Sequence record: NC_061449.1
Length of the DNA stretch: 64,000 nt
Strand: one strand, 5' to 3'
Position 1 is the stretch's first letter. Every line of letters starts with the position of its first letter. The position numbers and the translations under genes were made by a program. The notes beneath the pieces are model-generated. The model did not search any database. It had not been told where the DNA came from and was given only the letters and a program-made list of their open reading frames with translations. Of the stretch, positions 2,094 through 53,349 are shown one piece after another.

Positions 2094-5000
2094 ATGGCAA
2101 AAACGAACAACAAGGCTGAGAAAAAAGCTGAGAAGAAAGCTAAAGTCAAAGCCTCTAAGTCGAAGGACAAAGCAGTCGCCTCTGATGATATCGGTGGCGT
2201 TGAAGTATTAGGCTTTGACCTCGGCAGCATGATGGATGACGTGCTCGACGGCATCGAAAAGAAAACGAAAGTAAGTTCTGCCGATGCAGCACGACACGCA
2301 CCTCGCATCTCTACTGGTGTGCTCGCGCTTGATATGTACCTTGACGGCGGTATCGTACCTGGCGGTTGGTACACGTTCAGCGGCGGTGAGCAGTCGTGTA
2401 AGTCAACCATGACCATGAGTATCATGGCGAGTCTGATTCGTCTGAAATACTCTGGCATTAGCGTAGTGTTCGACTACGAAGGTTCGACAGATGCTGAATA
2501 CGTTGCTGGTCAGCTCAAAACGTTCGGTGTTAAAGTCGATCCGAAAACAATCTTCGGTGTGCGTGACGAAGACGGCTCGTGGATTATCAAGCCTAAGATT
2601 CGTTACTATGCACCAGACAATGGTGAGCGCTTCTTCGATTATATGTCGATGCTGCGTCGTCGTCTGCCTGACAAGATCGTAGAGAAAGACGGCTCTGCGT
2701 ATTACCTCTTTGAGAACAACAAAGAGAACGCGAAGAAGCTGGCTGGTAAGTACGACAAGAAGTGGTTCAGTCGTAACAACCAATTCAAAGTTCCTGCTGC
2801 TGATGGCCACATGCAAGCGGCTGTTATCGTTGACTCCTATCCGGCAATGCTGCCTGATCAGGTAGATGACGATGACGGTTCAAAAGCAATGGCACTGCAA
2901 GCGCGTATGTTCTCTGACGGCATCAAACGTTTCCGTGGTGGTATGCGTCGTAAGATGATGACCATCGTTGGCGTTAACCAGTTGCGTCAGAAGCCTGCTG
3001 TAATGTTCGGCTGTTTACATGGAAAGACGCTGGTACCATTCGTTGACGGTCGTGTTCTCCGCATGAAAGATATTGTGGATAATAAGATTGAAGGTGAAGT
3101 GTGGTCATACAACGAAGATAATCGTCAGATTGAACCGCGTCGCATTACTGCATGGCACCACAACGGCAACGTTGAAGATCAGTCGCATTGGATGCGCATT
3201 ATCACCCAATGCCCTGAAACTGCTAACGGACAGGCTTCCGTCACGGTGACTCCTAACCATGAAATTCTGACTGACCGTGGTTGGAAACGTGCTGACGAGA
3301 TCACAATGACTGACCGAGTTGTGTCGAAGTACACGTCAGTGCGTACTGGCTCCCTTGCTAAGTTCCTGAATGCTGTCGCTGTAGGCGATAGCTCGATGGT
3401 TGCGGATAGCCCGAACAGCGGCCTGTTGAAATTCCAGGATAACAACAACCCGGACTACGTTCTGTGGAAGATTGGTAAACTGGAAAATCACTTCGAGTTT
3501 GAATCCTATTCAGCTTCGCATGGCGGCGAGTGCTACATTGCTCGTGGTAGCGACTTTGTTGCTTACTCAAAGCAGGTGCCTGAGCGTGAGCCGTGGAAAG
3601 TTAAGTTTGATGACCTGTCGTTTGCTGTGTTCTACATGGACGACGGTACTCTGAAAACTGATCGCAAGAACGCCCTGTTTAGCATCAAGCGCTTTAAAGG
3701 CGATACTGCCGCCCTTGATTCGATTCATGCGATGTTTGCCGAACATGGCTTTGCGGTTAACTACAATCCTGACGACGGCTGTTTCTGGATGAACTTGAAT
3801 GAAAGTGATAGCTTCTTCCAGCGCATTCGTAAGTACGTGCCTGACTGTATGCAGTACAAACTGCCTGCTGAACATCAGGGCTTCTACGAAGAATTTGAAC
3901 TCGAAGGTCAAGAGCATGTGCGTCCAGTTTACGTACCTGTGATCGGCATCGAGCCTGGTTCTAAGAAAGCATTCCAGATGAAGGGCAAGTACGATATTAC
4001 TGTTGATAACAACCACAACTACATGGTTGGCAATTCGGCGAACGGAATCATCGTCCATAATAGTCCCGAATATGAGCCGGGCGGTGATGCGTTGAAGTTC
4101 TACTGCTTCGACCGCGACACTCTGATTCGTACTGACCACGGCGTGTTGACTGCACCGCAGATCAAAGAGCTGATGGAAGCTGGTACCGAAGTTCGTGTTG
4201 AATCGTTCGACGGTTATCAGAAGATTCAGGGTGCGTGGAAAGTTGATGACGCTCCGTTCCCAATCGAAATGAATGCTGGTGGTCACACATACATCGGCAG
4301 CGCAGAGCACCGTCAGTTCACGTTCATGTATGACTGGACAGCAGAAGGTATGATGGTTCTGCGTCCTGAGTGGAACACACTCGACCAGCTTGCTAAGTGG
4401 CCTGATAAGAAGGGTCAGTATGCAGGTCTGCGTGTACCGCCAGTGAAAGAACTGAAACAGAACGTGCCTGATGCGTTCGACGAAGCGAGCCAGCTTGTTC
4501 GTAATCTTCTCGGTAACTGCGATCCGGTTAGTGTGCAACTGCCTCTGGTGACTGACGGCGATACTACCTACGCTGCAAACGTGCTGACCATTGATATGGT
4601 TGGCGAAAGCACTGACGTGTCTGACTTCTCGTTCTGGGCTAAGAAGCTGCTGGATATCGGTGTGTACGCATACGCTGACGAAAGCGGTCTGCACATGCCT
4701 GGCCTGAACAAGTACGAGCTGACGCAAGCCGTAGAGCAATACGCTGAGGGTGAGTTTGTGGGTCTGTCGTTTGAGGCCACCAGCCGTCAACGTCAAACGC
4801 AGATGCTGACTGTTATCGCTGATGTGTTCCCTGAACTGACTCGCTATGTTCTGGACTATCAGTTGCAGACAGGTGATGATAAAATCTATCTTGCACCTGA
4901 GCAGGACTTCGCACAGGCTCTCGACCTGATTCTGCATAAGCAGATTGAAGGCTACGATGACATGTACGACCTGCTGATGACTCAGCTTGCCTACGTTGAA

Positions 5001-5669
5001 GACTGGTTCAACTTCGACAACTCGATTCTGCCTGTGCCGTTCACTCTGAAAGCTCTCGACAAGCCTGTTGAGTTCTGGGACGTGAATGTTGACGAAACCT
5101 CTGTGGTAATCACTAACGGTTTCGTATCGCATAACAGTGACGTGCGTGTTCGTCTGGCCTCTCGTGCAGTACCTGAAGGTTGGCCGAAGCTCAAAGACGC
5201 GCCTGGCGTTGTTGGTGAGAAGTCTGTTACTGTTGAAGGTGGTACTGACCGCTATCGTTTCATCGCTGCTAAGACCATCAAGAACAAGATGGGCGGCATC
5301 CCTAACCAGAGCACTTGGCTGCGTCTGTGGGAAGCTGATGGTAATGGTGAAGCGCGTGGTTTCGACCCAGTGTTCGATACGTGGCACTATCTGAAAGTTC
5401 TCGGCCTGATCAACGGTACTCGTAAGAACTTCAAGATCAAAGCGCCATGTCCTCTTGCATCCGAAGTCAAGATGGACTGGGATGACTTCCGTACTCTTAT
5501 CAACGGCAGCAAAGAACAAGTCGTTGCTGTCTGTAAGAAACTGAAAGTCAAACCTGCAGGTCTGCGTCTGTGGTGCTTCAAGTTTGTGCAGTCTGCCAAA
5601 GGCAAAGAAATGTTGAAAGCGTCTATCAGTAAGTCTGCGAAGTCTTCTGATGACGGTGACGACGAGTAA
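2094..5669 (+). CDS. recA: RecA/UvsX-family recombinase precursor with two inteins (predicted spliced product 497 aa)
   Basis: ISTGVLALD, Walker A variant GGEQSCKST, Walker B VIVDS, MALQARMFS, VNQLRQK..VMFG, SPEYEPGGDALKFY, SDVRVRL, KTIKNK. Confidence 0.93.
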   Translation: MAKTNNKAEKKAEKKAKVKASKSKDKAVASDDIGGVEVLGFDLGSMMDDVLDGIEKKTKVSSADAARHAPRISTGVLALDMYLDGGIVPGGWYTFSGGEQSCKSTMTMSIMASLIRLKYSGISVVFDYEGSTDAEYVAGQLKTFGVKVDPKTIFGVRDEDGSWIIKPKIRYYAPDNGERFFDYMSMLRRRLPDKIVEKDGSAYYLFENNKENAKKLAGKYDKKWFSRNNQFKVPAADGHMQAAVIVDSYPAMLPDQVDDDDGSKAMALQARMFSDGIKRFRGGMRRKMMTIVGVNQLRQKPAVMFGCLHGKTLVPFVDGRVLRMKDIVDNKIEGEVWSYNEDNRQIEPRRITAWHHNGNVEDQSHWMRIITQCPETANGQASVTVTPNHEILTDRGWKRADEITMTDRVVSKYTSVRTGSLAKFLNAVAVGDSSMVADSPNSGLLKFQDNNNPDYVLWKIGKLENHFEFESYSASHGGECYIARGSDFVAYSKQVPEREPWKVKFDDLSFAVFYMDDGTLKTDRKNALFSIKRFKGDTAALDSIHAMFAEHGFAVNYNPDDGCFWMNLNESDSFFQRIRKYVPDCMQYKLPAEHQGFYEEFELEGQEHVRPVYVPVIGIEPGSKKAFQMKGKYDITVDNNHNYMVGNSANGIIVHNSPEYEPGGDALKFYCFDRDTLIRTDHGVLTAPQIKELMEAGTEVRVESFDGYQKIQGAWKVDDAPFPIEMNAGGHTYIGSAEHRQFTFMYDWTAEGMMVLRPEWNTLDQLAKWPDKKGQYAGLRVPPVKELKQNVPDAFDEASQLVRNLLGNCDPVSVQLPLVTDGDTTYAANVLTIDMVGESTDVSDFSFWAKKLLDIGVYAYADESGLHMPGLNKYELTQAVEQYAEGEFVGLSFEATSRQRQTQMLTVIADVFPELTRYVLDYQLQTGDDKIYLAPEQDFAQALDLILHKQIEGYDDMYDLLMTQLAYVEDWFNFDNSILPVPFTLKALDKPVEFWDVNVDETSVVITNGFVSHNSDVRVRLASRAVPEGWPKLKDAPGVVGEKSVTVEGGTDRYRFIAAKTIKNKMGGIPNQSTWLRLWEADGNGEARGFDPVFDTWHYLKVLGLINGTRKNFKIKAPCPLASEVKMDWDDFRTLINGSKEQVVAVCKKLKVKPAGLRLWCFKFVQSAKGKEMLKASISKSAKSSDDGDDE
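3012..4061 (+). mobile_element. Intein 1 (350 aa) with LAGLIDADG homing endonuclease, inserted after VMFG (L2 loop)
   Basis: Begins CLHGKTLV, block B VTPNHEILT, ends IIVHN before Ser; LAGLIDADG-like LNAVAVGDS and FAVFYMDDG. Confidence 0.93.
4104..5135 (+). mobile_element. Intein 2 (344 aa), inserted after ALKFY; endonuclease motifs not recognisable
   Basis: Begins CFDRDTLI, block B-like GSAEHRQF, ends VDETSVVITNGFVSHN before Ser. Confidence 0.88.
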
Positions 5670-37222: not shown

Positions 37223-37269
37223 TCTATCAATCGAGGCAGCGCTCACGGGTGCTGCACAGGAGAAACATT

Positions 37270-38808
37270 ATGTCATTCGATCTTCGTCAAAACTTACTGC
37301 TTGTTCGTGACGCTGCCTTGACAGGCAAGCCGCTGTTTTATTTCTACAACGCCATGGGACGTGAGATGGTTCTTACTGGCGATGTGCTGCGTGAAATCAT
37401 TGAGCGCCAGAAAGAAGGTACGCTCTGCACTAACACTTACTGGGGTTTCGCGTCTGACCCTACGCTAGAGGTTTGGTCGTTCGACGATAACAATGACCTA
37501 ATGCTTCACCATCACGTAGGCAAGTCCTGCAAAACGTTCCTGCCGTATGAGATGCTTGAGAGTGCTCACGAAGGCTTCAAGCCCATCAATGGTCTGTTCA
37601 TCGAAGACAGTCTGCGCCGCATAATCAAGATTCATCTCAAGGCAACATGCCGTGAGGAACAAAAGATCACTTGGTTTGCCGATCTACCTGAGTCCGAAAT
37701 GCGTAGCATGTTGTTATCTCTCGGTGTGGGTCCGATGCGTGTGTCGCGGGAAGACAAAGAAGGTCTGGTCAAGCTGCATGGCCGTTGGCTGGAAGACTTC
37801 GATGATAAGTACAAGTACACGCATAACGCAATCGGCTTGGACGACAACGAAAAAATTCCTGCTGACTATCGCCCTGACCGCATTCGTGACATTACGAAGC
37901 GTATGATGGCTAATGGCAAAACTCAGGATATGATGGACCAAACTCTGAATGACTTGTTGCGTCAGTGTCGTATTCGCGGCGATATCCCGCATCCGGGCCG
38001 TAACTTCAATCGCCATCAATTGACTTGCTACTACGCAACGCATTTGATCTTTGCGCACGACGCGAAAGAGAAAATGTCAGAACTGATTGATAATCCGCAA
38101 TTCGTGGTCAACTTCATTTATGGCTGGTACCCGGAATATACGTGGATTACGATCAACGAAGAAACGTTCGAGTATCAGCAGTCGCTGGTACGTGCCGCGC
38201 TGATCAGTCTGCAACGTCATGTGCAGAATGAAGTTGATGTATACAAGATCGATCATGGCATGGTTAAGTTTGCAGACAACTTCGAACCAAAAACAAACGA
38301 AAAGCCAGAAGATGATGGTGATCTTGATCTGGATAAACTGGACAGAGATGGTCTGTTAGAGCTGGTCATCCAGTATAAGCTGGCCTCAGCAAAGAAAGCC
38401 GCATCACTCGATATTTCTGAGTTACGTGAGCTTTGTGAAGACCATTTCGGGTATGATGAAGTTGAAGAGGACGAGCCAGAACAGGAGCGTGAGCCTCGTA
38501 AATTCCCAGCCGTCAGCGATGACCGTAATATCAGCTACGAAGCGATTCGTAAGGTTCTGATGAAAGCTAAAGTTCCTCGCGCTACCTACGCAGGCGACCT
38601 GTACTCAAACAACCGAGCAACTGTAAGCAAAGTACGTAAGAGCATAATCAGTGCTCTGACAAATGCAGTTGAAGAGGGTATGCTGAATAAACTGCCTCAA
38701 ATCTCATTAGAGGCTATTGCATACGCTCTGACAAAAATGAAAGACGGTGATCGCTATCCGCGTGACGCTGAGTACCTGAAAGAACTAATTAAACACGCAC
38801 TGCGTTAA
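37270..38808 (+). CDS. Hypothetical protein carrying the shared ~45-aa helical module
   Basis: AGGAG RBS; LDLDKLDRDGLLELVIQYKLASAKKAASLDISELRELCEDHFG at 38323-38454. Confidence 0.8.
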   Translation: MSFDLRQNLLLVRDAALTGKPLFYFYNAMGREMVLTGDVLREIIERQKEGTLCTNTYWGFASDPTLEVWSFDDNNDLMLHHHVGKSCKTFLPYEMLESAHEGFKPINGLFIEDSLRRIIKIHLKATCREEQKITWFADLPESEMRSMLLSLGVGPMRVSREDKEGLVKLHGRWLEDFDDKYKYTHNAIGLDDNEKIPADYRPDRIRDITKRMMANGKTQDMMDQTLNDLLRQCRIRGDIPHPGRNFNRHQLTCYYATHLIFAHDAKEKMSELIDNPQFVVNFIYGWYPEYTWITINEETFEYQQSLVRAALISLQRHVQNEVDVYKIDHGMVKFADNFEPKTNEKPEDDGDLDLDKLDRDGLLELVIQYKLASAKKAASLDISELRELCEDHFGYDEVEEDEPEQEREPRKFPAVSDDRNISYEAIRKVLMKAKVPRATYAGDLYSNNRATVSKVRKSIISALTNAVEEGMLNKLPQISLEAIAYALTKMKDGDRYPRDAEYLKELIKHALR

Positions 38809-42389: not shown

Positions 42390-42438
42390 GCAATAACGAG
42401 CGGGGCAGTATATAGCTGCCCTGCTATCTGCGAAGTAT

Positions 42439-42492
42439 GCAGAAAACTGGACAAAATCGTGGTTGCTATCTGAAAGCGACCTATGATATACT
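42439..42492 (+). promoter_or_regulatory. Early-type promoter family copy 9
   Basis: GCA-GAAAAC-TGGACAAAAT ... TATGA-TATACT; shares ATCTGCGAAGTATGCA upstream with copy 1. Confidence 0.8.
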
Positions 42493-42549
42493 TAATGCAG
42501 ACGCAATAGTGCGTCGCACATAAAACACATATACTGAGGAGTATTAATC

Positions 42550-44166
42550 ATGGCACGTATCGAAACTAACACTAACCTGGTTGGCAAAACTATCGTCCTG
42601 CTGAACGGCACCAAAACTAAAATCGAAGATGCAATCGCATCCGGCTACAAAGTGAAAGGCCAGACGAAACGTATCGCTACCCGTTGCGTTGTGAAAGATG
42701 GTGCGCACTTCCGTGAAATCGAACGTATGAACATGAGCCAGCTGGAAGATACAGGCGAAGGTTATGTTAAGCTGAAAGATGCGAAAGCGTCTGGCAAGAA
42801 AGCGACCGGCAAGAAAGACGCTGTGAAAGAGAAAGCGCCTAAGACTTCTGGTAAGAAGACTGGCGGCAAAGTCTCGAAAGAGAAAGAGCCGAAAGTTCGT
42901 CGCAAAACAAAAGTTAGTGGAGGCGAAGACGAGCTGGACTTCAATGATTTTTCAGCAACCGCTGTTGCTGGCTCTATCATCAAAGGCGGCAAGGCGAAAC
43001 CTGCTGTTGAAATCGAGGCTGTAGACGAAACGCTGACCGATACTGTAGCCAAACGTCTGGTGGCGCTGATTGAAAACAGCGAAATTGCGAAAGTGTGCGC
43101 TGACAACAAAACGCCGATCGCTAACGCGCTGTCAGTTGCTTACGGTGCTGAGTACGCCGAAGAGAACAACACAATGCAGATCACGCTGAGCCTGCAATAT
43201 GCGATGCCTGTCAAAGATACCGCTGTTGCGCCTGAGCTTGATGAAGCTGTTGCGAAACGTGCCTCCAAACTTGCTGCTAAGAAGATTGGCAAAGTGCTGG
43301 CGAAAGCAATCAAAGCTGCGTTTGATCTCGAAGATGCAAACGACCTGCTGCCCGGTACTGTACTGACCACTGACGGTGCTGAGTTCGTGTTTGTGGGTGA
43401 ATCTGCTAAACACGCCGGCAAAGCGCTGATGTATAGCGCAGACACTGACGGCTTCAAATCATTCGGCGCCGACAAGCTGTCCGACTTCGAAATCGTCGCT
43501 GAGGAAAGCGAAGAAGTCGAAGAAGAAGAGGAAGAAGAGGAAGAAGAAGTCGAAGAAGTCGAAGAAGAAGAGGAAGACGGCGAAGACGACGACAACGTAG
43601 AAGATGACGGCGAGCCACAAGACGCCGAATACGAGTTCGTTGCTGTCGAAGCTGATCAACTCGAACTGGTCAACAAGAAAGTGACCGCGAAGTATCACGC
43701 TGCACTTGCCGAACGTTTCGGCGTAGACGAAGAAGCGCTCGCCCCTGGCCTGATGTTGACTGACGGCGAAACAACCTTCGCTTATCTGGGCTGCGATAGC
43801 AAAGGCGGGCTGTTGGTAATCGACCTGTCTGACGACGCAGACGAAGAAGATAACGTTCTGGTCTATAGTAAAGCGGATATCAAAACGCTGAACGACTTTA
43901 GCCCTGTGATCGATAGCGGTGAAGCTGACGACGCCGAAGAAGACACCGAAGAAGAAAACGACACCGAAGAAGAAAACGACTTCGAAGATGAAGACGGTGA
44001 AGAAGACGAAGACGAAGAAGACTTCGAATTTGACGACGCACCGAGCGAAGACCTCGAAGATCTGTCCGAAGACGAGCTGCGTGATCGCGCTGTTGAAGCC
44101 GGTCTGACTACGCCGCGTAAAGCAGACAAAATGAATGCTGCCCAGCTGCGTAAGCTCCTGAAGTAA
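42550..44166 (+). CDS. Large acidic multidomain protein, paralogue of 44243..45655
   Basis: GAGGAG RBS; shared N-terminal domain, two LxPG..F.(F/Y)(V/L)G domains, D/E tracts, C-terminal helical module. Confidence 0.85.
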   Translation: MARIETNTNLVGKTIVLLNGTKTKIEDAIASGYKVKGQTKRIATRCVVKDGAHFREIERMNMSQLEDTGEGYVKLKDAKASGKKATGKKDAVKEKAPKTSGKKTGGKVSKEKEPKVRRKTKVSGGEDELDFNDFSATAVAGSIIKGGKAKPAVEIEAVDETLTDTVAKRLVALIENSEIAKVCADNKTPIANALSVAYGAEYAEENNTMQITLSLQYAMPVKDTAVAPELDEAVAKRASKLAAKKIGKVLAKAIKAAFDLEDANDLLPGTVLTTDGAEFVFVGESAKHAGKALMYSADTDGFKSFGADKLSDFEIVAEESEEVEEEEEEEEEEVEEVEEEEEDGEDDDNVEDDGEPQDAEYEFVAVEADQLELVNKKVTAKYHAALAERFGVDEEALAPGLMLTDGETTFAYLGCDSKGGLLVIDLSDDADEEDNVLVYSKADIKTLNDFSPVIDSGEADDAEEDTEEENDTEEENDFEDEDGEEDEDEEDFEFDDAPSEDLEDLSEDELRDRAVEAGLTTPRKADKMNAAQLRKLLK

Positions 44167-44242
44167 TCTCGTAACACTGAAATAAGATGCGGTTCATACA
44201 GAGCCGCATCTCTGACAACTAAGCTGATTGAGGAATCACACT

Positions 44243-45655
44243 ATGTCAAACGCAAATGCAAACCTGTTGAACGCTCGTGTACGTCGTCTGGACGGTACTG
44301 TAACTTACATCAATAAAGTAAATAGTAACGGTTATAGCACCGACGCGAAAGGTCCGCAGATTCCAGTTAAGCGTATCGTGCTTGCTGGCAAAACGCTGAA
44401 AGAGATTGAAGCGCCGTTAGCGAAAGCTGAACACGTTCTGATTGACGGTATCACTGTGAAGCTGAACAAGCGCCAGCAGAAAGACTTGCTCAACAACGAG
44501 CTTGATCTCGACACAATCAAGCCAGACTTTAGCTCTCTGGTGTACATTGACCCTGAGACAGGCAAGCCAGCTACTGCGAAAGCACCGAAAGCAGAGAAAG
44601 CTGCAAAGCCTAAAGCAGGGCTGAAAGCAACACGCGAGCGTAACGAAGCGAAAGGTCCTTCACTCGCACAGCAGGTAGACGCAGTGATCGCTGATGCTAA
44701 TAGCGTAGCGAAACGCGCCGATGCAGCGAAAGCGTTTGGCATGTTGTGGAAAGATTTGAAAGTTGCCAAGGGCGTTGACGTTGTAAAAGCTCTTGGCCGT
44801 AGCCATGTACGTAAAGCGCTCAAAGCGCTGGACACCGAAGCTGCTAACCTGAAAGCTGATGTAGATTTGCTGCCGTCTGATAAAGTTGATCGCAAAGCAG
44901 AACTGGCACACACTATCGACGCAACCATCGCCGATGCTGATACGCAAGATCGCCGTAAGCTGTTGAGCGAAGCGTTTGACATGGACTGGAAAGACGTTAA
45001 GAAGCACGGTGGTAAGGGCGTCATCAAGCACATGGGCCGTAAAGCTGCCCAGTCTGCTGTGAATCGTCTGCGTGAAGGCGTGAAGCAAGACACGTTCATT
45101 AAGCAAATGCCTATCGCGCTGAAACGTCTGATTCAAGACGGCAATCTGACGCTGAACAAAGCGCAGATTGAACGTGTGCTGGGTGCGCTTGACCTCGACG
45201 TGAAGTTCTACGACGTGGCAATGCAAACACTGCTGGGTAATCTCAAGCTGTCTCTCGACAAATCTATTGAGAACCCGAAAGTGAAAGAGAAGAAAGCGAA
45301 GCACAAACTTGCAGTGCCGACCTACGCTTCTGAAAAAGAACAGACCAAGCGTGTGCGCAAAATGACTATCAAGCTCATTAAGCCCCCGAAGAAAGAAATG
45401 AAAGCGGCAAGAGCGCACATGAAAGAATCAAAAGCGATCATCGCCAAGAAGCTGGGCATCAAACCTGCTGATGTGAAGCGTGGCCTGATCTGCTACAAGC
45501 CGAACGGTGTTGAGCTGATGTTCGTCGCGTGTGACATGACCGGCCCTGTCTTCATCGAGAAAGACGGCAGCGAATGTGTAATGGCACATGCCAACGTTGC
45601 ACACACCTTCAATCTGACTCTGGGCCCTAAATCTGAACTGGATGCTGCTGTATGA
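44243..45655 (+). CDS. Large basic multidomain protein, paralogue of 42550..44166
   Basis: GAGGA RBS; shared N-terminal domain; two internal IDAxIADA..AF.M.WKD repeats; Lys/Ala-rich. Confidence 0.85.
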   Translation: MSNANANLLNARVRRLDGTVTYINKVNSNGYSTDAKGPQIPVKRIVLAGKTLKEIEAPLAKAEHVLIDGITVKLNKRQQKDLLNNELDLDTIKPDFSSLVYIDPETGKPATAKAPKAEKAAKPKAGLKATRERNEAKGPSLAQQVDAVIADANSVAKRADAAKAFGMLWKDLKVAKGVDVVKALGRSHVRKALKALDTEAANLKADVDLLPSDKVDRKAELAHTIDATIADADTQDRRKLLSEAFDMDWKDVKKHGGKGVIKHMGRKAAQSAVNRLREGVKQDTFIKQMPIALKRLIQDGNLTLNKAQIERVLGALDLDVKFYDVAMQTLLGNLKLSLDKSIENPKVKEKKAKHKLAVPTYASEKEQTKRVRKMTIKLIKPPKKEMKAARAHMKESKAIIAKKLGIKPADVKRGLICYKPNGVELMFVACDMTGPVFIEKDGSECVMAHANVAHTFNLTLGPKSELDAAV

Positions 45656-46035: not shown

Positions 46036-46493
46036 AAAAGGCCAAAGTAGCAATTAGTCGCGGTGGCTACAGACCGTCATCGCAAGAAGAAGCAAAGAAG
46101 CTGATAGCTGAATTTATTCTCGGTACTATCGGCGTCGACCCTACTGTTATCAGTCAACAAATGCTGTTGAACGTTGCGAACTACAACTACCTAACGTCTA
46201 TCGCAGACACAGGCAAGGCAAACGCAGCCAACCAAGCAGCATTGCATAAAACTGTAAAAGAACTTAATGCGTTCTGTAGACTGCACAAGATTCAACTGGG
46301 ATTACTAATTATGCCCCATACATCTGCTAGTGATTATTCTGGCGATGAAGTTGTAGCGATTCCGTGGGAGCATGTGCAGAAAAACGCATTAAGCCAGTCT
46401 GCCATCGAGTCGCTGTTTCAAACAGTTGAAGCCGATGGTTATCCGCAGTTTGTGACTGATGCGAAAACAGTAGAGGGATACAATGTTTTATGA
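46032..46493 (+). CDS. Hypothetical protein (start ATG 46032)
   Basis: GGGAG RBS. Confidence 0.7.
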   Translation: MKKAKVAISRGGYRPSSQEEAKKLIAEFILGTIGVDPTVISQQMLLNVANYNYLTSIADTGKANAANQAALHKTVKELNAFCRLHKIQLGLLIMPHTSASDYSGDEVVAIPWEHVQKNALSQSAIESLFQTVEADGYPQFVTDAKTVEGYNVL

Positions 46494-47763
46494 TCATGTA
46501 TTCAGCCACGACGAGAAGCAATTGCTCTTGTCTGTGGCAGAATCTAAATATCTGGTTCGGCTAGACTGCCCAGAGTATTTGAAGAAATCGAAACACGCGA
46601 TTGAAATTCGCCACACTGTGACGAACCGTGGTGAGCAACGTCGCAGTGGTACAATCACAACTGCGTTTGTACCGCGTATTCATTCTGCGACTGTGCAGCG
46701 CCTTGTGCGCGATGTTCGTGACTCTGCCTCAAAGAGTTCGTCTGATAATCTCGCTGCGCTGTTTGAGCTGGGTCTTGGTGTACCGAAGCAACACGATATT
46801 GCAGTGTACCTGAAAGACTACTCGCGTGAGAACGATAAGAAAGGTGTGGGTATCAAATATATCCGCAAACTGATTAACGAGTACCATCGAAAGCATCGTC
46901 ACAGTTTTGCCGGTAGTCGCTGGTTGATGCCCGCAGCGTATACTGCGAACATGCTCAACATGCAGAACTTCATTCATCTGAAAGAAGACGGTTACTCGAA
47001 GAAAGTAAAAGTACCTGAGGGTGTGCCTGTCGTGTTCATCTACCAGAACACGAATCATGAGAAAGCGATGTTTACGATGTGCGACGCATTCATGATAAGC
47101 CCGCTCGGTTACCCGATGCCGTTCGCGCAGATAGCGTTACGACCTGAGTTCAAAGCTGCACCGAAAGAGTTCAAGTCGAAAGCGCTGCGTGGCAAAAGCA
47201 TGTACGCCATGGTCATGGGCATTGTCTACTGGGAAGAAGGAAGTGCGATTGAGAACTTCCGGGAGCTACAGGCAATTGATGACGACCCGTATCTGACGCT
47301 GCTTAGTGACGAGAAGTACGCTGACCGCCGCTCTGAGGAGTATCAAGAGCTGCTGGACAAACGTGTTGAACTGAACGAGCAAGCGAAACACTGGAACGCA
47401 GTGATCGCTAAGTATGGCAACACAACGCGCACTCTGAAACCCGAACAAGTCGAGAAGCTACAGAAAGCCGAAGCGTTTTTCAAAGAACGCAAAGAGTTCA
47501 TGGACGACTTCGACAAGTTCGAGAAGAAAGAAAACCACAAAGCTGCGAAGAAGTTCGCTGCTGCGAAAGCGCTGTTTGCCGCTGTTGATTGTGGCACTAT
47601 CATGGACCGCACGACTTATATGTCCGTGTCGTCTGGGCTTGACGATGTGAATAAGATTCTTACCGTATGGGGATTCACAACCGTCAATACTGTTAATGTT
47701 AGTTTGAAGAAGTCTGTTCTTACATACGACCGCAAAAACGCAAGCCGCGTCTGGTCACTGTAA
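46483..47763 (+). CDS. Hypothetical protein
   Basis: 426 aa, GAGGGA RBS. Confidence 0.75.
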   Translation: MFYDHVFSHDEKQLLLSVAESKYLVRLDCPEYLKKSKHAIEIRHTVTNRGEQRRSGTITTAFVPRIHSATVQRLVRDVRDSASKSSSDNLAALFELGLGVPKQHDIAVYLKDYSRENDKKGVGIKYIRKLINEYHRKHRHSFAGSRWLMPAAYTANMLNMQNFIHLKEDGYSKKVKVPEGVPVVFIYQNTNHEKAMFTMCDAFMISPLGYPMPFAQIALRPEFKAAPKEFKSKALRGKSMYAMVMGIVYWEEGSAIENFRELQAIDDDPYLTLLSDEKYADRRSEEYQELLDKRVELNEQAKHWNAVIAKYGNTTRTLKPEQVEKLQKAEAFFKERKEFMDDFDKFEKKENHKAAKKFAAAKALFAAVDCGTIMDRTTYMSVSSGLDDVNKILTVWGFTTVNTVNVSLKKSVLTYDRKNASRVWSL

Positions 47764-47789: not shown

Positions 47790-50700
47790 ATGTCTAATAA
47801 TAATCTGGGCGCTGCTGCATCATTTGGTTCTGAAACACAAAAGCAGATTAGCGACGAGCAACGTCGTGCTCACTCTGCTGAGAGCGGTCATCTGAACAAA
47901 TGCACCATCGTTGTTCTGACTTCTCTGAACGCTCACGGTCGCTTCTCTTACATGAGCGCTGACGAGCAACTGCACGAGAAGTCGATTGAAGGTAAGGTAA
48001 TGGATCGACTGCCTAGCCTGATCGAACGTGCAACTGGTCCTTCTACAGACCAGAACAGTGCGTATTACATTCTGCATCCAAACAATGGTGTGCCTACTCG
48101 CATCGACGAGCGCATCAAAGTTGGTGAAGGTGATGCGGTCATTGTTTCGTATACTGTAAATAAAGCGGTGTCAGAGATGCACGGTAGTTTGTCGCTCGCT
48201 CTTTTCAGCGCAGGCGAAAGCGACCTGTCAGACTTGGCAGCCGAGTTTGGGGTTCACTCTATCTCGATTGTCGAAGAAAGCAAAGCCGGTAATTACATTC
48301 AGGCACTCGCCGCTCAGGTGGAAGCTCTGCAAACTGTAAATATCACAAGCATTGATGAAACTGATGGTGCTCTCGATAAAGCGGTAATTGATTACAGCGC
48401 GTTGCCAGCTAACCCTGTTACTGTGCTGTCTGGTGCTGTGCGTACTTTCATCATGCAAACTATTGGCGGCGAGATCGTTGCTGCAATTCCAAATAACGGA
48501 GAACTGAACGTGAAACAACCTACCAACGCAACGCCTGTAAACCTGAGCGAAGACTTCGACGCAGAAGACGAAGTTGTTGATCAGCATGAAGGCGGCGACG
48601 AAGAAGAAGTTGCTACTGGCACTGACCTGTTCGGCTACAAAGCAGAAACGCTGTCTGTTGAGCAAATGACCGAAGCGCTCGAAGCGATTGGTTATGATCT
48701 GACTGCGATGAACGAAGACGGTATTCGTGAATCGTTCGACACTGAGCAGGCCATCTGGCTGGAAAAAGCTGACAGCGCCGAAGTAGACGGCGAAGACGAC
48801 GATGCCGAAGACGAAGAAGAAGACGAAGAAGAAACCGAAGACGGTGACTTCGATGCCGTTCAATTCCTCGCTTCTGTGCTGGTCGCCGAAGAACTGGATC
48901 GTGCCGGTCTGAAAGTTCTGATTCGTACTCAAGACCTTCCGGTGATGAAGAAAGACACCGTTGAAACTCTGACTGCGAAGCTGCTTGAGCTGGTCGAAGG
49001 CGCAACCGAAGAAGAGATGGTTGAACTGCTGAACACATTCGTAGGCGCTCTGCAAGAGCATGAAATCGCCTGCCCGAACATGCTGGCGGCTCTGTCTTCT
49101 GACGAAGACGAAGACGAAGACGAAGACGAAGACGAAGACGAAGACGAAGAAGATTCTGAGGAGGAAGAAGACTCCGAAGATGATGAAGACGAAGACGAAG
49201 AAGATTCTGAGGAGGAAGAAGACTCCGAAGATGATGACGGTGATGACCTGCAGGAGCAGATTGACGCCGTAACTGATCCTCTCGACTACTTCCAGTTTAC
49301 CGGCGGTGCCCTGACTGCTGAACAACGTGCTGCTGCCGTTGCTGCTATGGGTGAAGACGCATCTGCGATGACTATCGTTCAGGTAATGAAAGCGTTTACT
49401 CGCATTCAAAGCCAGACCAGCCCTATCGCTGCTGACGATGAAGCTGACCTTTCGTCTAACGTTGACGAACTGACTGCGCTGCTTGGTCAGTACGATGAAG
49501 CGACCGTTCAGCACGTAGCTGAAAGCCTGGGCATTCTCGTTGACGAATGCGAAACCGCTGACGAAATGATCGAAGCGATTGCTAACGGCGGTAACGAAGA
49601 CGACTTCGCCGCAGTTGAAGAGATCGCAACTAACTACGGTGTTGACCTGTCCGAAGTTGCTGACGGCCGTGAGCTGAACTTTGTTGACGCTCTGCTTGCC
49701 GTGCTGCCAGCGTTCCTGAACGACGACGAAGTTTCCGACGACGAAGACGAAGACGAAGACGCCGATGAAGCAGGCGACGATGAAGTTGAAAGCGAAGACG
49801 AAGATGAAGTAGAAGCTGAGGGCGATGCCCCTGCTGAAAACGATCATCTGAAATTCGTTAAGTCTGTTGATACCACAAATCGCGTTGGCCCTATGCTGAC
49901 TGTCGATATGGACCAGACTCTGATCATCAACTTCACGCTGACTGACGGTGATACTTACTCGCCGATTGAAAGCGAACTGTCTGACATTAACGGCTTCAAC
50001 TACCGCTATCCGTTCAATCTGGGTAAAGCTGGTAAAGCGCCGGGCGCGATGCACCTGCCAGCGCAGTCTCTGCTGGACATCATCGAACGTACCAGCACTA
50101 CTCGCTTCATGGCTGACCCATCAACGTTCGATGTTGCTGCGTGGTCTGAGAGTCTCGAAGCGACTCTGGAAGATGAAATCGCATCATCTCTGTATGCTGG
50201 TCGCATCGAAGATGGTATGGACCCGAACGAAGCTGGTCTTGTCGTCGGTGAGTTCATCGACGAAGAAGAAATCGCACAAGCCACTGAGCTGGGATACATC
50301 GACGAAGATCAGTTTGCAGAACTGCAGGGCGACCATCTGCCGATTGCAAGCCTGTACAGTGCTAAGTCTCGCGTCCGTCCTGTGCAGGTTGATACTGCCC
50401 ACGTCGCGCTGCACACCACTGTGATGAACGTTGCAGTCCCTGGCTTCTGGGGTGACTCTGATGTTTCTCTGCTGGTGCAAGCTGCTGTTAACCGCGTTAT
50501 CGCTCTGGCTGGTACCGTTGAAGGTATCAAAGTGTACGCTGGCTTCACGTTCGAGTCTGCTGCACTGCTGAACAACGACCGTCTGTTTGAAGCGCTGACC
50601 GCACTGCGCACCATGGAAGGCGTACAGTCTTACTCTGCTGCTGACGCTGCGAACTTCGACGACGCAGAAGACGTGATCGAAGTAGCTGGTGCTCTCGATG

Positions 50701-50840
50701 CTCGCGACCTGCCGCTGTCTATCCTGTCTGGCGGTCTGGCTGCTGCAACGTTCGATAACGGCGGTGACCTGACTGTTCTTGTTCAGTGTTCTCCTGAGGA
50801 AGAAGAATCCGAAGAAGAAGACGAAGGCGAAGACGAATAA
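47790..50840 (+). CDS. Giant (1016 aa) hyper-acidic protein with several HeH-like modules
   Basis: GAGGAG RBS; D/E tracts; EELDRAGLKVLIRTQDLPVMKKDTVETLTAKLL. Confidence 0.85.
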   Translation: MSNNNLGAAASFGSETQKQISDEQRRAHSAESGHLNKCTIVVLTSLNAHGRFSYMSADEQLHEKSIEGKVMDRLPSLIERATGPSTDQNSAYYILHPNNGVPTRIDERIKVGEGDAVIVSYTVNKAVSEMHGSLSLALFSAGESDLSDLAAEFGVHSISIVEESKAGNYIQALAAQVEALQTVNITSIDETDGALDKAVIDYSALPANPVTVLSGAVRTFIMQTIGGEIVAAIPNNGELNVKQPTNATPVNLSEDFDAEDEVVDQHEGGDEEEVATGTDLFGYKAETLSVEQMTEALEAIGYDLTAMNEDGIRESFDTEQAIWLEKADSAEVDGEDDDAEDEEEDEEETEDGDFDAVQFLASVLVAEELDRAGLKVLIRTQDLPVMKKDTVETLTAKLLELVEGATEEEMVELLNTFVGALQEHEIACPNMLAALSSDEDEDEDEDEDEDEDEEDSEEEEDSEDDEDEDEEDSEEEEDSEDDDGDDLQEQIDAVTDPLDYFQFTGGALTAEQRAAAVAAMGEDASAMTIVQVMKAFTRIQSQTSPIAADDEADLSSNVDELTALLGQYDEATVQHVAESLGILVDECETADEMIEAIANGGNEDDFAAVEEIATNYGVDLSEVADGRELNFVDALLAVLPAFLNDDEVSDDEDEDEDADEAGDDEVESEDEDEVEAEGDAPAENDHLKFVKSVDTTNRVGPMLTVDMDQTLIINFTLTDGDTYSPIESELSDINGFNYRYPFNLGKAGKAPGAMHLPAQSLLDIIERTSTTRFMADPSTFDVAAWSESLEATLEDEIASSLYAGRIEDGMDPNEAGLVVGEFIDEEEIAQATELGYIDEDQFAELQGDHLPIASLYSAKSRVRPVQVDTAHVALHTTVMNVAVPGFWGDSDVSLLVQAAVNRVIALAGTVEGIKVYAGFTFESAALLNNDRLFEALTALRTMEGVQSYSAADAANFDDAEDVIEVAGALDARDLPLSILSGGLAAATFDNGGDLTVLVQCSPEEEESEEEDEGEDE
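49101..49237 (+). repeat. (GACGAA)8 microsatellite plus 51-bp-period tandem duplication in CDS
   Basis: GACGAA x8 at 49101-49148; 50 identical nt at 49137-49186 and 49188-49237. Confidence 0.9.
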
Positions 50841-52524: not shown

Positions 52525-53349
52525 ATGGCTAAAGCTGCTAAAGCAACCGTTAACACCGCATCTCTGGTTCTGGCAAAAATGCTTGGTGTTGTAGTAGAAA
52601 ACGCGACCGATAAAGAAATCGCTGCGCTGCTCGCATCTGCCGGTCTGACCGTGTCTGGTGGCAAAGTTGTTAAAGCTGACAAAGGCGGTAAAGCTGCTAA
52701 AGGCAAAAAGGCAAAAGCACCTACCGTTGCTGAAATCGTCGCTGCTGTGAAAGACGAAGAAGAACTGGACATTTCCGGCGTTGACGAAGACACTCTGCGT
52801 GAAGCAGTTGTCAAAGCCAAGCTGGCTAATAAAAAGAAAGCAGGTGCGCTGGACGAAGACGAACTGCGCGAACTGCTGAACGACAACCTGGGTGGCGAGT
52901 CCGATGAGGACGAAGACGAAGAAGAAGAAGAAGAGGACGACGAAGACGAGGACGAAGAGTCCGACGACGAAGACGAAGACGGCGACGACGACGAAGACGA
53001 AGACGACGACTCTGATGATGAAGAAGAGGACGACGAAGACGACGAAGACGGCGACGACGACGAAGACGACGAAGACGGCGACGACGAAGATGAAGATGAA
53101 GACGACGAAGATGAAGACGAGGATGAAGATGAAGATCTCGACCTCGATTCACTCGACGAAGACGAACTTCGCGCCCTGGTAATCGAACACAAGCTGGCCG
53201 CCGCCAAGAAAGCGAAAAAGATGGACGAAGATGAACTGCGCGAACTCTGCGAAGAACACTTCGGCGGCGAAGACGACGAAGACGACGAAGACGAAGATGA
53301 AGACGACGAAGACTTCGACGACGAAGACGAAGACGAAGACGACGAGTAA
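52525..53349 (+). CDS. Hyper-acidic protein with two copies of the shared helical module
   Basis: AGGA RBS; modules at 52765-52896 and 53137-53268 flanking a near-pure D/E tract. Confidence 0.85.
   Translation: MAKAAKATVNTASLVLAKMLGVVVENATDKEIAALLASAGLTVSGGKVVKADKGGKAAKGKKAKAPTVAEIVAAVKDEEELDISGVDEDTLREAVVKAKLANKKKAGALDEDELRELLNDNLGGESDEDEDEEEEEEDDEDEDEESDDEDEDGDDDEDEDDDSDDEEEDDEDDEDGDDDEDDEDGDDEDEDEDDEDEDEDEDEDLDLDSLDEDELRALVIEHKLAAAKKAKKMDEDELRELCEEHFGGEDDEDDEDEDEDDEDFDDEDEDEDDE

Follow-up and report, generated by a model that had tools for sequence, protein, structure and literature searches.

Adjoining acidic and basic paralogues in Erwinia phage pEa_SNUABM_17 and related jumbo phages: a possible nucleic-acid-associated protein pair

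Several nucleic-acid binders carry an auto-inhibitory acidic tail, among them HMGB1 and, through their C-terminal tails, T7 gp2.5, T4 gp32 and bacterial single-stranded DNA-binding protein (SSB). In polycation/polyanion chaperone pairs the two charges reside on separate proteins, as in histone H1 with prothymosin-alpha and histones with nucleoplasmin. Here we describe two adjoining genes, gp311 and gp312, of Erwinia phage pEa_SNUABM_17, an Alexandravirus jumbo phage with a genome of 263,916 bp that infects Erwinia amylovora. The stretch of DNA that we analysed, hereafter the window, is 64,000 nt long and identical to positions 199917-263916, the last 64 kb, of this genome. We refer to gp311-like proteins, which are acidic, as type A and to gp312-like proteins, which are basic, as type B; coordinates of all features are collected in Table 1.

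By analogy, gp311 and gp312 are perhaps best classed with the basic nucleic-acid-binding proteins that have an acidic partner or tail. Like the proteins with HMGB1- or SSB-type tails, gp311 has a positive head (+18 over the first 121 residues) followed by long, predicted disordered acidic tracts (about -89 over the remainder). Unlike them it has no predicted HMG box or OB fold, and two folded barrels break up an acidic part of far greater length. With H1 and prothymosin-alpha the pair has in common that one protein is Lys-rich and the other Glu/Asp-rich, that both are partly disordered and apparently made together, and that the complementary charge is conserved. Unlike the histone/chaperone pairs, gp311 and gp312 are paralogues with folded domains in common, they belong to a phage, no histone fold is present and their interaction is hypothetical. 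gp311 also resembles T7 Ocr, T4 Arn and SPO1 Gp46 (the last a documented inhibitor of the nucleoid protein HU; PMC8892312) in being an acidic phage protein encoded behind an early-type promoter. Those proteins are small and folded, whereas gp311 is 538 aa long and modular, with largely disordered acidic parts and a basic module of its own, and it has no sequence or fold match to any of the three. As in Tudor, Spindlin, KOW, PWWP, WYL and Sm domains and in Sso7d and Cren7, all-beta barrels of 50-75 residues are predicted in gp311 and gp312, the second type being helix-capped, but they match no Pfam model of the SH3-like barrel families. The PHROG database holds the two proteins in separate unannotated families, with phrog_33433 matching gp311 over its full length (residues 1-537, E 9.4e-200) and phrog_32501 matching gp312 full-length (E 3e-132); common origin, shared domains and charge pairing are unrecorded there. 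We found no paper treating the gp311/gp312 families and no functional or proteomic data for these genes in the literature, and it appears to be unreported that the phrog_33433 and phrog_32501 families descend from one ancestor, contain two new barrel domains and keep their charges paired.

We identified gp311 and gp312 as paralogues that share two domains. The N-terminal alignment on which the initial annotation had based its proposal of paralogy was reproduced exactly, with 16 of 52 residues identical (31%, BLASTP E 2e-4). Orthologues were collected and aligned for each protein (alignments A1 and A2), and sub-alignments were compared with hhalign. The N-domain profiles match with a probability of 95.9% (E 6e-9), compared with an internal background of about 7% at most for unrelated segment pairs of the two proteins, and the N-domains are thus homologous at the level of hidden Markov models (HMMs). 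Among the six-frame open reading frames of the whole phage genome, the N-domain HMM of each protein retrieves the other alone (E 3e-5 and 3e-6), the next match lying at E > 0.5. Further N-domain or barrel-domain paralogues elsewhere in the genome were rejected at the sensitivity of these HMM searches.

The second shared domain, which had likewise been proposed, is a helix-capped barrel, which gp311 contains twice and gp312 once. Within gp311 the copies match each other by BLASTP (E 0.004) and by hhalign (94.9%, E 4e-8); against the gp312 C-terminus, hhalign gives 87.1% (E 4e-6) for copy 2 and 58% (E 1e-4) for copy 1. Pairwise BLASTP of copy 2 with the gp312 C-terminus found no match, and the link between the two proteins through this domain is profile-based. 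HMMs built from gp312 also retrieve type A proteins, at E 4e-6 in JA13 and at E 1.6e-4 in a Yersinia phage, and AlphaFold2 predicts the same topology, one helix and four strands, for all three helix-capped barrels. The homology of both shared domains bears out the duplicated ancestor that had been postulated: judged from these profiles, gp311 and gp312 are an ancient tandem duplication from one ancestor.

Opposite charge was the other main claim made for the two neighbours, and it holds both here (Table 1) and across their relatives. We searched a combined N-domain profile (A3) against 1.84 billion representative proteins and obtained 40 matches at E < 1e-3, a few of them repeat-protein false positives; in the others the N-domain lies at the extreme N-terminus of a protein of 250-650 aa. 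Type A relatives have a net charge of -50 to -117, always with a basic stretch after the N-domain, and type B relatives of 0 to +35, nearly all of them +10 to +35. The opposition is kept in about 100 relatives, very distant ones included, while the domains are only 20-40% identical across lineages. Because these ranges hold across all relatives found, the sequences support the view that opposite charge is a maintained trait rather than drift. The N-domain itself is positive in both families (median +5 and +9) and is followed by basic tails (+13 and +7). In many distant type A proteins the C-terminus is an acidic tail with aromatic residues at its tip, such as ...DFE or ...EFGQF.

Among named members, the two families are restricted to the Lu11/PaBG-like ('Lupandier', hairy) jumbo phages, a group defined in PMC7412058. 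They occur in Alexandravirus, Y3, Yoloswag, Dickeya AD1, the JA phages (Salmondvirus), Yersinia fHe-Yen9-02 and marine phage NCTB. A profile search of Pseudomonas phage PaBG, for which a virion proteome exists, found no homologue, the sole match being an acidic-tract artefact. All 57 phage-collection records with A, genomes of cultured phages, also have B (57/57), adjacent to it on the same strand, in the same order and about 1.7 kb downstream. The two genes adjoin likewise on one metagenome contig of 222 kb. On this contig, and in JA13 and fHe-Yen9-02, A and B are followed by two small genes and then by the genes for a protein of about 420 aa and a hyper-acidic one of 900-1000 aa, in that order. 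In a maximum-likelihood tree of 50 N-domains, A and B fall into clades of their own with 98/98 support, and therefore the duplication is older than the radiation of these genera.

One metagenome contig, L012, carries at 2808-5398 an adjoining acidic (449 aa, net -48) and basic (387 aa, net +18) paralogue whose N-domains are about 70% identical, compared with 31% in the window. Their coding regions have an identical DNA tract of 43 nt in common, which is a sign of gene conversion between the neighbouring N-domains. This indicates an N-domain that A and B can exchange while the charge difference is retained. The basic member on L012 also retains an A-like middle domain.

AlphaFold2 models from the family alignments (mean predicted local distance difference test score, pLDDT, 65 for gp311 and 74 for gp312; predicted template modelling score ~0.3) depict both proteins as folded beads with disordered spacers (pLDDT < 50) between them. 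The description of gp311 as hyper-acidic with Asp/Glu linkers stands for its net charge of -71 and its two acidic tracts; it does not stand for residues 77-121, a Lys-rich tail of net +13. Given this tail behind the gp311 N-domain, the unit common to both proteins is therefore a positive barrel plus a basic tail. Lys/Ala/Pro-rich low-complexity tracts of the kind known from H1 are present at residues 77-121 of gp311 and at residues 108-137 and 341-404 of gp312.

At the C-terminus of gp311 three short helices are predicted with a pLDDT of 82-89 (residues 507-516, 522-526 and 530-537). This helix-loop-helix with its acidic flank recurs in gp319 (E 1.3e-7) and gp302 (E 3e-4), and therefore several acidic proteins of the non-structural arm of the genome have one short module in common. 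In gp311 and gp302 the acidic flank and the helix-loop-helix are also covered by phrog_30618. In the second acidic tract of gp311, contigs from public runs vary in length at the strain level (+GAA; -6 nt) at window positions 43930-43960, which is typical of slippage in GAA/GAG runs.

gp312 contains, as had been noted, two repeats: R1 and R2 are tandem helical units of about 70 aa that are 40% identical (E 3e-12). R1 is an insertion/duplication polymorphism, present here and in a few relatives (about 470 aa) and absent from most orthologues (about 410 aa), and it accounts for this difference in length. After the N-domain, the helical core (residues 283-340) is the best-kept part of type B, and the ELDAxV-type C-terminus is invariant. 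The gp312 start codon is ATG, in agreement with the GenBank record, with GAGGAA upstream of it.

Searches for a known fold or family returned resemblances. Neither as whole proteins nor as single domains did gp311 and gp312 score above the cut-offs in Pfam, NCBIfam or PADLOC. PDB sequence-profile searches yielded weak uL24 matches and composition-driven matches only, the type B profile reaching ribosomal uL24 chains at E 0.006-0.05. Structural matches, all of them weak, were to SH3-like small barrels (KOW, Tudor, Spindlin, PWWP, WYL, the MscS beta-domain and the UvrD Tudor domain). Foldseek searches of PDB, BFVD and AFDB clusters, shape and feature searches of the ESM Atlas and a VIA re-alignment returned family members or sub-threshold SH3-like leads only. 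The KOW motif of uL24/NusG has no Pfam match in either protein, its only trace being the uL24 matches just given, and the OB fold has no match in any fold search of the two. Compared with Sm/Hfq, a helix and four clear strands are predicted, with no predicted oligomer and no LSM Pfam match. The acidic tracts of gp311 differ from folded DNA mimics of the Ocr/ArdA type in that they are predicted to be disordered (pLDDT < 50). For the gp311 C-terminus, the SAP model (Pfam PF02037) scores 16 bits (E 0.0095), below its cut-off of 23.9, and among the copies of this motif in relatives one of 17 matches SAP. DUF1918 has no match in the phage genome. Because the weak matches fail the cut-offs, 'SH3/Tudor/Sm-like' and 'SAP-like' denote resemblances only: in the models the barrels look SH3/Tudor/Sm-like and the gp311 C-terminus SAP-like, which falls short of membership.

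gp311 and gp312 sit in a 75-kb block, almost wholly on the + strand, that forms the non-structural (replication/recombination) arm of the genome and encodes a resolvase, an RNA ligase, a sigma factor, an SSB, a UvsX-like recombinase, an endonuclease, a phosphohydrolase and a topoisomerase II. The SSB is separately annotated, as gp242. The promoter scan placed a sigma-70-like promoter with an extended -10 element before gp311. Genome-wide, the extended -10 pattern of this class, TRTGNTAYAMT, has 11 sites, all on the + strand and none on the - strand, compared with an expectation of 4.2 for the two strands together; 10 of the 11 sites lie within the window. A second box, with the consensus GCAAATAAcTGGACAAAAT, precedes all ten by a constant ~24 nt and is thereby placed near -48 and not -35. 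The two-part motif is also found upstream of the A gene in fHe-Yen9-02, NCTB, L007 and L012, and the A gene of JA13 has a similar upstream box. A phage factor may take part in reading this bipartite promoter class.

The 76-nt gap between gp311 and gp312 contains no promoter of the extended -10 class and includes a hairpin (-20.9 kcal/mol for the gap, z -2.9). A hairpin occupies the same place, with a different sequence, in JA13, L007 and L012. An intrinsic terminator between the two genes in the window was rejected, since the hairpin has no U run after it. Many intergenic gaps of the non-structural arm hold similar stem-loops, some of them followed by T runs.

What could such a pair do? Our favoured reading, held tentatively and at somewhat less than an even chance, is that gp311 and gp312 are a co-expressed, nucleic-acid-associated pair of a polyampholyte and a polycation. 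Both would be co-transcribed from the gp311 promoter, early or midway in infection, and the intergenic hairpin might serve as attenuator or as stabiliser, with gp312 possibly made at a lower level than gp311. Through the positive N-barrel and Lys-rich tail that they have in common, the two proteins would reach the same polyanionic target; phage DNA is the likeliest and, given that the surrounding genes are those of DNA metabolism, the simplest candidate. gp312 could then serve as a polycationic coat or bridge on the nucleic acid. gp311 would be a bipolar polyampholyte whose acidic tracts compete with the nucleic acid for its own basic segments and those of gp312, and so might be a built-in antagonist, tuner, solubiliser or chaperone that adjusts binding, comparable to the acidic tails of HMGB1 and of phage and bacterial SSBs or to the acidic chaperones of H1 and core histones. 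That gp312 binds DNA and that gp311 acts as a mimic or chaperone we infer from their composition and class of fold; the two proteins may also contact each other directly. A bolder extension, which we regard as a long shot, is that in jumbo phages without a protein-shell nucleus, N-barrel-targeted gp312 and gp311 condense with phage DNA into a chromatin-like or coacervate replication compartment, the hairpin setting their stoichiometry.

Several observations weigh against the proposed pair. The NCTB-like lineages (NCTB and a 251-kb contig) carry A without B, and therefore A has a role of its own. The type B protein of JA13 (Salmondvirus) has no C-terminal barrel, which, together with the A-only lineages, argues against obligate hetero-assembly through the shared second domain. 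Hetero-assembly, as suggested in the initial annotation, received neither support nor contradiction from complex prediction with gp311 as residues 1-100 and 109-538, full-length gp312 and the family alignments supplied; the interaction score (ipSAE) was 0.00, and electrostatic, disordered complexes would in any event escape such a prediction. Pfam, NCBIfam and PDB sequence searches place neither protein in a nucleic-acid-binding family. The residues invariant across both N-domains are mostly Gly or hydrophobic, plus one Tyr and one Glu, a pattern that looks structural rather than like an obvious DNA-contact surface. Finally, transcription of the two genes and its timing are read from sequence motifs only, the RNA-library data being uninformative: contigs from metatranscriptome runs behave at this locus like DNA carry-over, among them one flat 23-kb contig, and come from mixed strains.

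Alternatively, gp311 may be a host-takeover decoy, an anti-host polyanion whose Glu/Asp tracts imitate DNA and soak up host nucleoid proteins or nucleases in the manner of T7 Ocr, T4 Arn and SPO1 Gp46, with gp312 an independent DNA binder and no action of either protein on the other. This idea would fit the great length of the acidic tracts (-32 and -34), the early-type promoter in front of the gene and the presence of A without B in NCTB-like phages, and acidic phage proteins that inhibit HU or similar proteins are documented (PMC8892312). Nonetheless, we consider a decoy unlikely. Known DNA mimics are small and folded, with a structured acidic surface, whereas the gp311 tracts are predicted to be disordered; gp311 also bears a positive N-module of the same kind as that of gp312, and the strict adjacency, the conserved charge pairing and the N-domain gene conversion argue for a coupled function. 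That coupling could itself be questioned: gp311 and gp312 might be tandem duplicates whose low-complexity spacers drifted in composition, leaving an opposite charge without joint meaning. Low-complexity tracts change length easily, as the acidic-tract indels between strains illustrate, and close relatives differ in whether they have the R1 repeat. However, sign and magnitude of the charge are kept in both families in spite of domain identities of only 20-40%, co-occurrence and gene order are invariant across 57 genomes, and the lineage with homogenised N-domains still has one acidic and one basic member, which makes uncoupled drift very unlikely.

Two further explanations keep the proteins together and give them another place of action. 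Charged proteins occur among phage internal head proteins, and gp311 and gp312 could be loaded into the capsid with the genome and ejected, their charged tracts serving DNA packing or ejection. Jumbo phages do have many virion-associated proteins of unknown function (PaBG proteome, PMC7412058). We rate packaging as highly improbable, given that both genes are surrounded by replication and repair genes of the non-structural arm, that their sigma-70-type extended -10 promoter class is confined to that arm, that no virion proteome including gp311 or gp312 was found in the literature, and that a polyanion of net -71 is an unlikely partner of packaged DNA. The pair could instead be RNA- or ribosome-associated factors, whose KOW/Sm-like barrels bind RNA or the translation/transcription machinery, whose helix-capped barrels might form Sm-like rings and whose charged tails modulate binding. 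The top weak matches point in this direction (DSIF KOW, ribosomal uL24, the RNA polymerase-binding UvrD Tudor domain, and the Sm-like MscS and WYL barrels), as does the arrangement of one helix followed by 4-5 strands, which resembles Sm/Hfq. Yet all of these matches are below significance, KOW and LSM have no Pfam match in either protein, complex prediction gave no ring or other interface, and the neighbouring genes are those of DNA metabolism; an RNA-related role is decidedly unlikely in our view.

About 70% of jumbo-phage genes are orphans, and here two unannotated families are joined into one ancient paralogue pair with a conserved acidic/basic opposition. The finding yields a conserved gene cassette, a promoter class that can be defined and a putative domain by which both proteins are targeted. 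It also turns two 'hypothetical proteins' into a testable hypothesis on how a 264-kb genome might be organised or protected in a cell without a phage nucleus. Should the two proteins bind DNA as well as each other, they would represent a phage counterpart of a basic chromatin protein with its acidic chaperone, and the two beta-barrel domains would merit new family definitions.

Table 1. Window coordinates of gp311, gp312, their domains and neighbouring features (res, residues; AF2, range in the AlphaFold2 model; net, net charge; pI, isoelectric point)
Feature	Position	Strand	Details
gp311 (type A)	42550..44166	+	538 aa, pI 4.3, net charge -71; annotated hypothetical
N-terminal all-beta barrel, common to gp312	42550..42777	+	res 1-76, net +5; AF2 barrel 10-76
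Lys/Gly/Ala/Pro-rich disordered tail	42778..42912	+	res 77-121, net +13, pLDDT < 50
Middle alpha/beta domain, type A-specific	42997..43242	+	res 150-231; AF2 150-221
Helix-capped four-strand barrel, copy 1	43243..43497	+	res 232-316; AF2 232-312
Acidic (Glu) tract 1	43498..43629	+	res 317-360, net -32; predicted disordered, pLDDT < 50
Helix-capped barrel, copy 2	43630..43899	+	res 361-450; AF2 368-445
Acidic (Asp/Glu) tract 2 with conserved FxFDD motif	43900..44064	+	res 451-505, net -34, pLDDT < 50
C-terminal helix-loop-helix, SAP/HeH-like	44065..44163	+	res 506-538; three short AF2 helices
gp312 (type B)	44243..45655	+	470 aa, pI 9.8, net charge +30; annotated hypothetical
N-terminal barrel and helix	44243..44512	+	res 1-90; AF2 10-83
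Lys/Ala/Pro-rich disordered tail	44564..44653	+	res 108-137, net +7
Helical repeat R1, insertion in only some orthologues	44654..44869	+	res 138-209
Helical repeat R2	44870..45088	+	res 210-282
Conserved helical core, motif MPxxLKRLI...LxLN	45089..45262	+	res 283-340
Lys-rich stretch with long helix	45263..45454	+	res 341-404, net +15
C-terminal barrel and conserved ELDAxV tail	45455..45652	+	barrel res 405-460; AF2 415-455
GC hairpin after gp310 stop codon, upstream of gp311 promoter	42402..42422	+	read from sequence
Upstream promoter box TGGACAAAAT	42448..42457	+	about 24 nt before TATG of extended -10
Sigma-70-like promoter of gp311	42463..42492	+	TTGCTA, 18 nt, TG-extended TATACT; promoter scan
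Short GC hairpin between gp311 -10 element and ribosome-binding site	42500-42515		
Intergenic gp311-gp312 hairpin	44185..44211	+	11 bp, no U run after
Promoter-class sites in the window	11077, 15675, 20883, 27875, 31279, 36273, 39617, 42482, 55455, 59513	+	
gp302	37249-38808		shares gp311 C-terminal motif
gp319	52525-53349		shares gp311 C-terminal motif
gp315	46483-47763		three genes downstream, within same conserved cassette
gp316	47790-50840		adjoins gp315, within same conserved cassette

The neighbourhood holds a second adjoining basic/acidic couple, formed by gp315 (426 aa, pI 9.3, net +13) and gp316 (1016 aa, pI 4.05, net -206). Residues 481-549 of gp316 give sub-threshold CARF/Crn1-like matches (E 0.003-0.004). 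Elsewhere in the window, at 2094-5669, the product of the gene annotated 'UvsX-like recombinase' is, at 1191 aa, about three times as long as T4 UvsX and must carry large extra domains.

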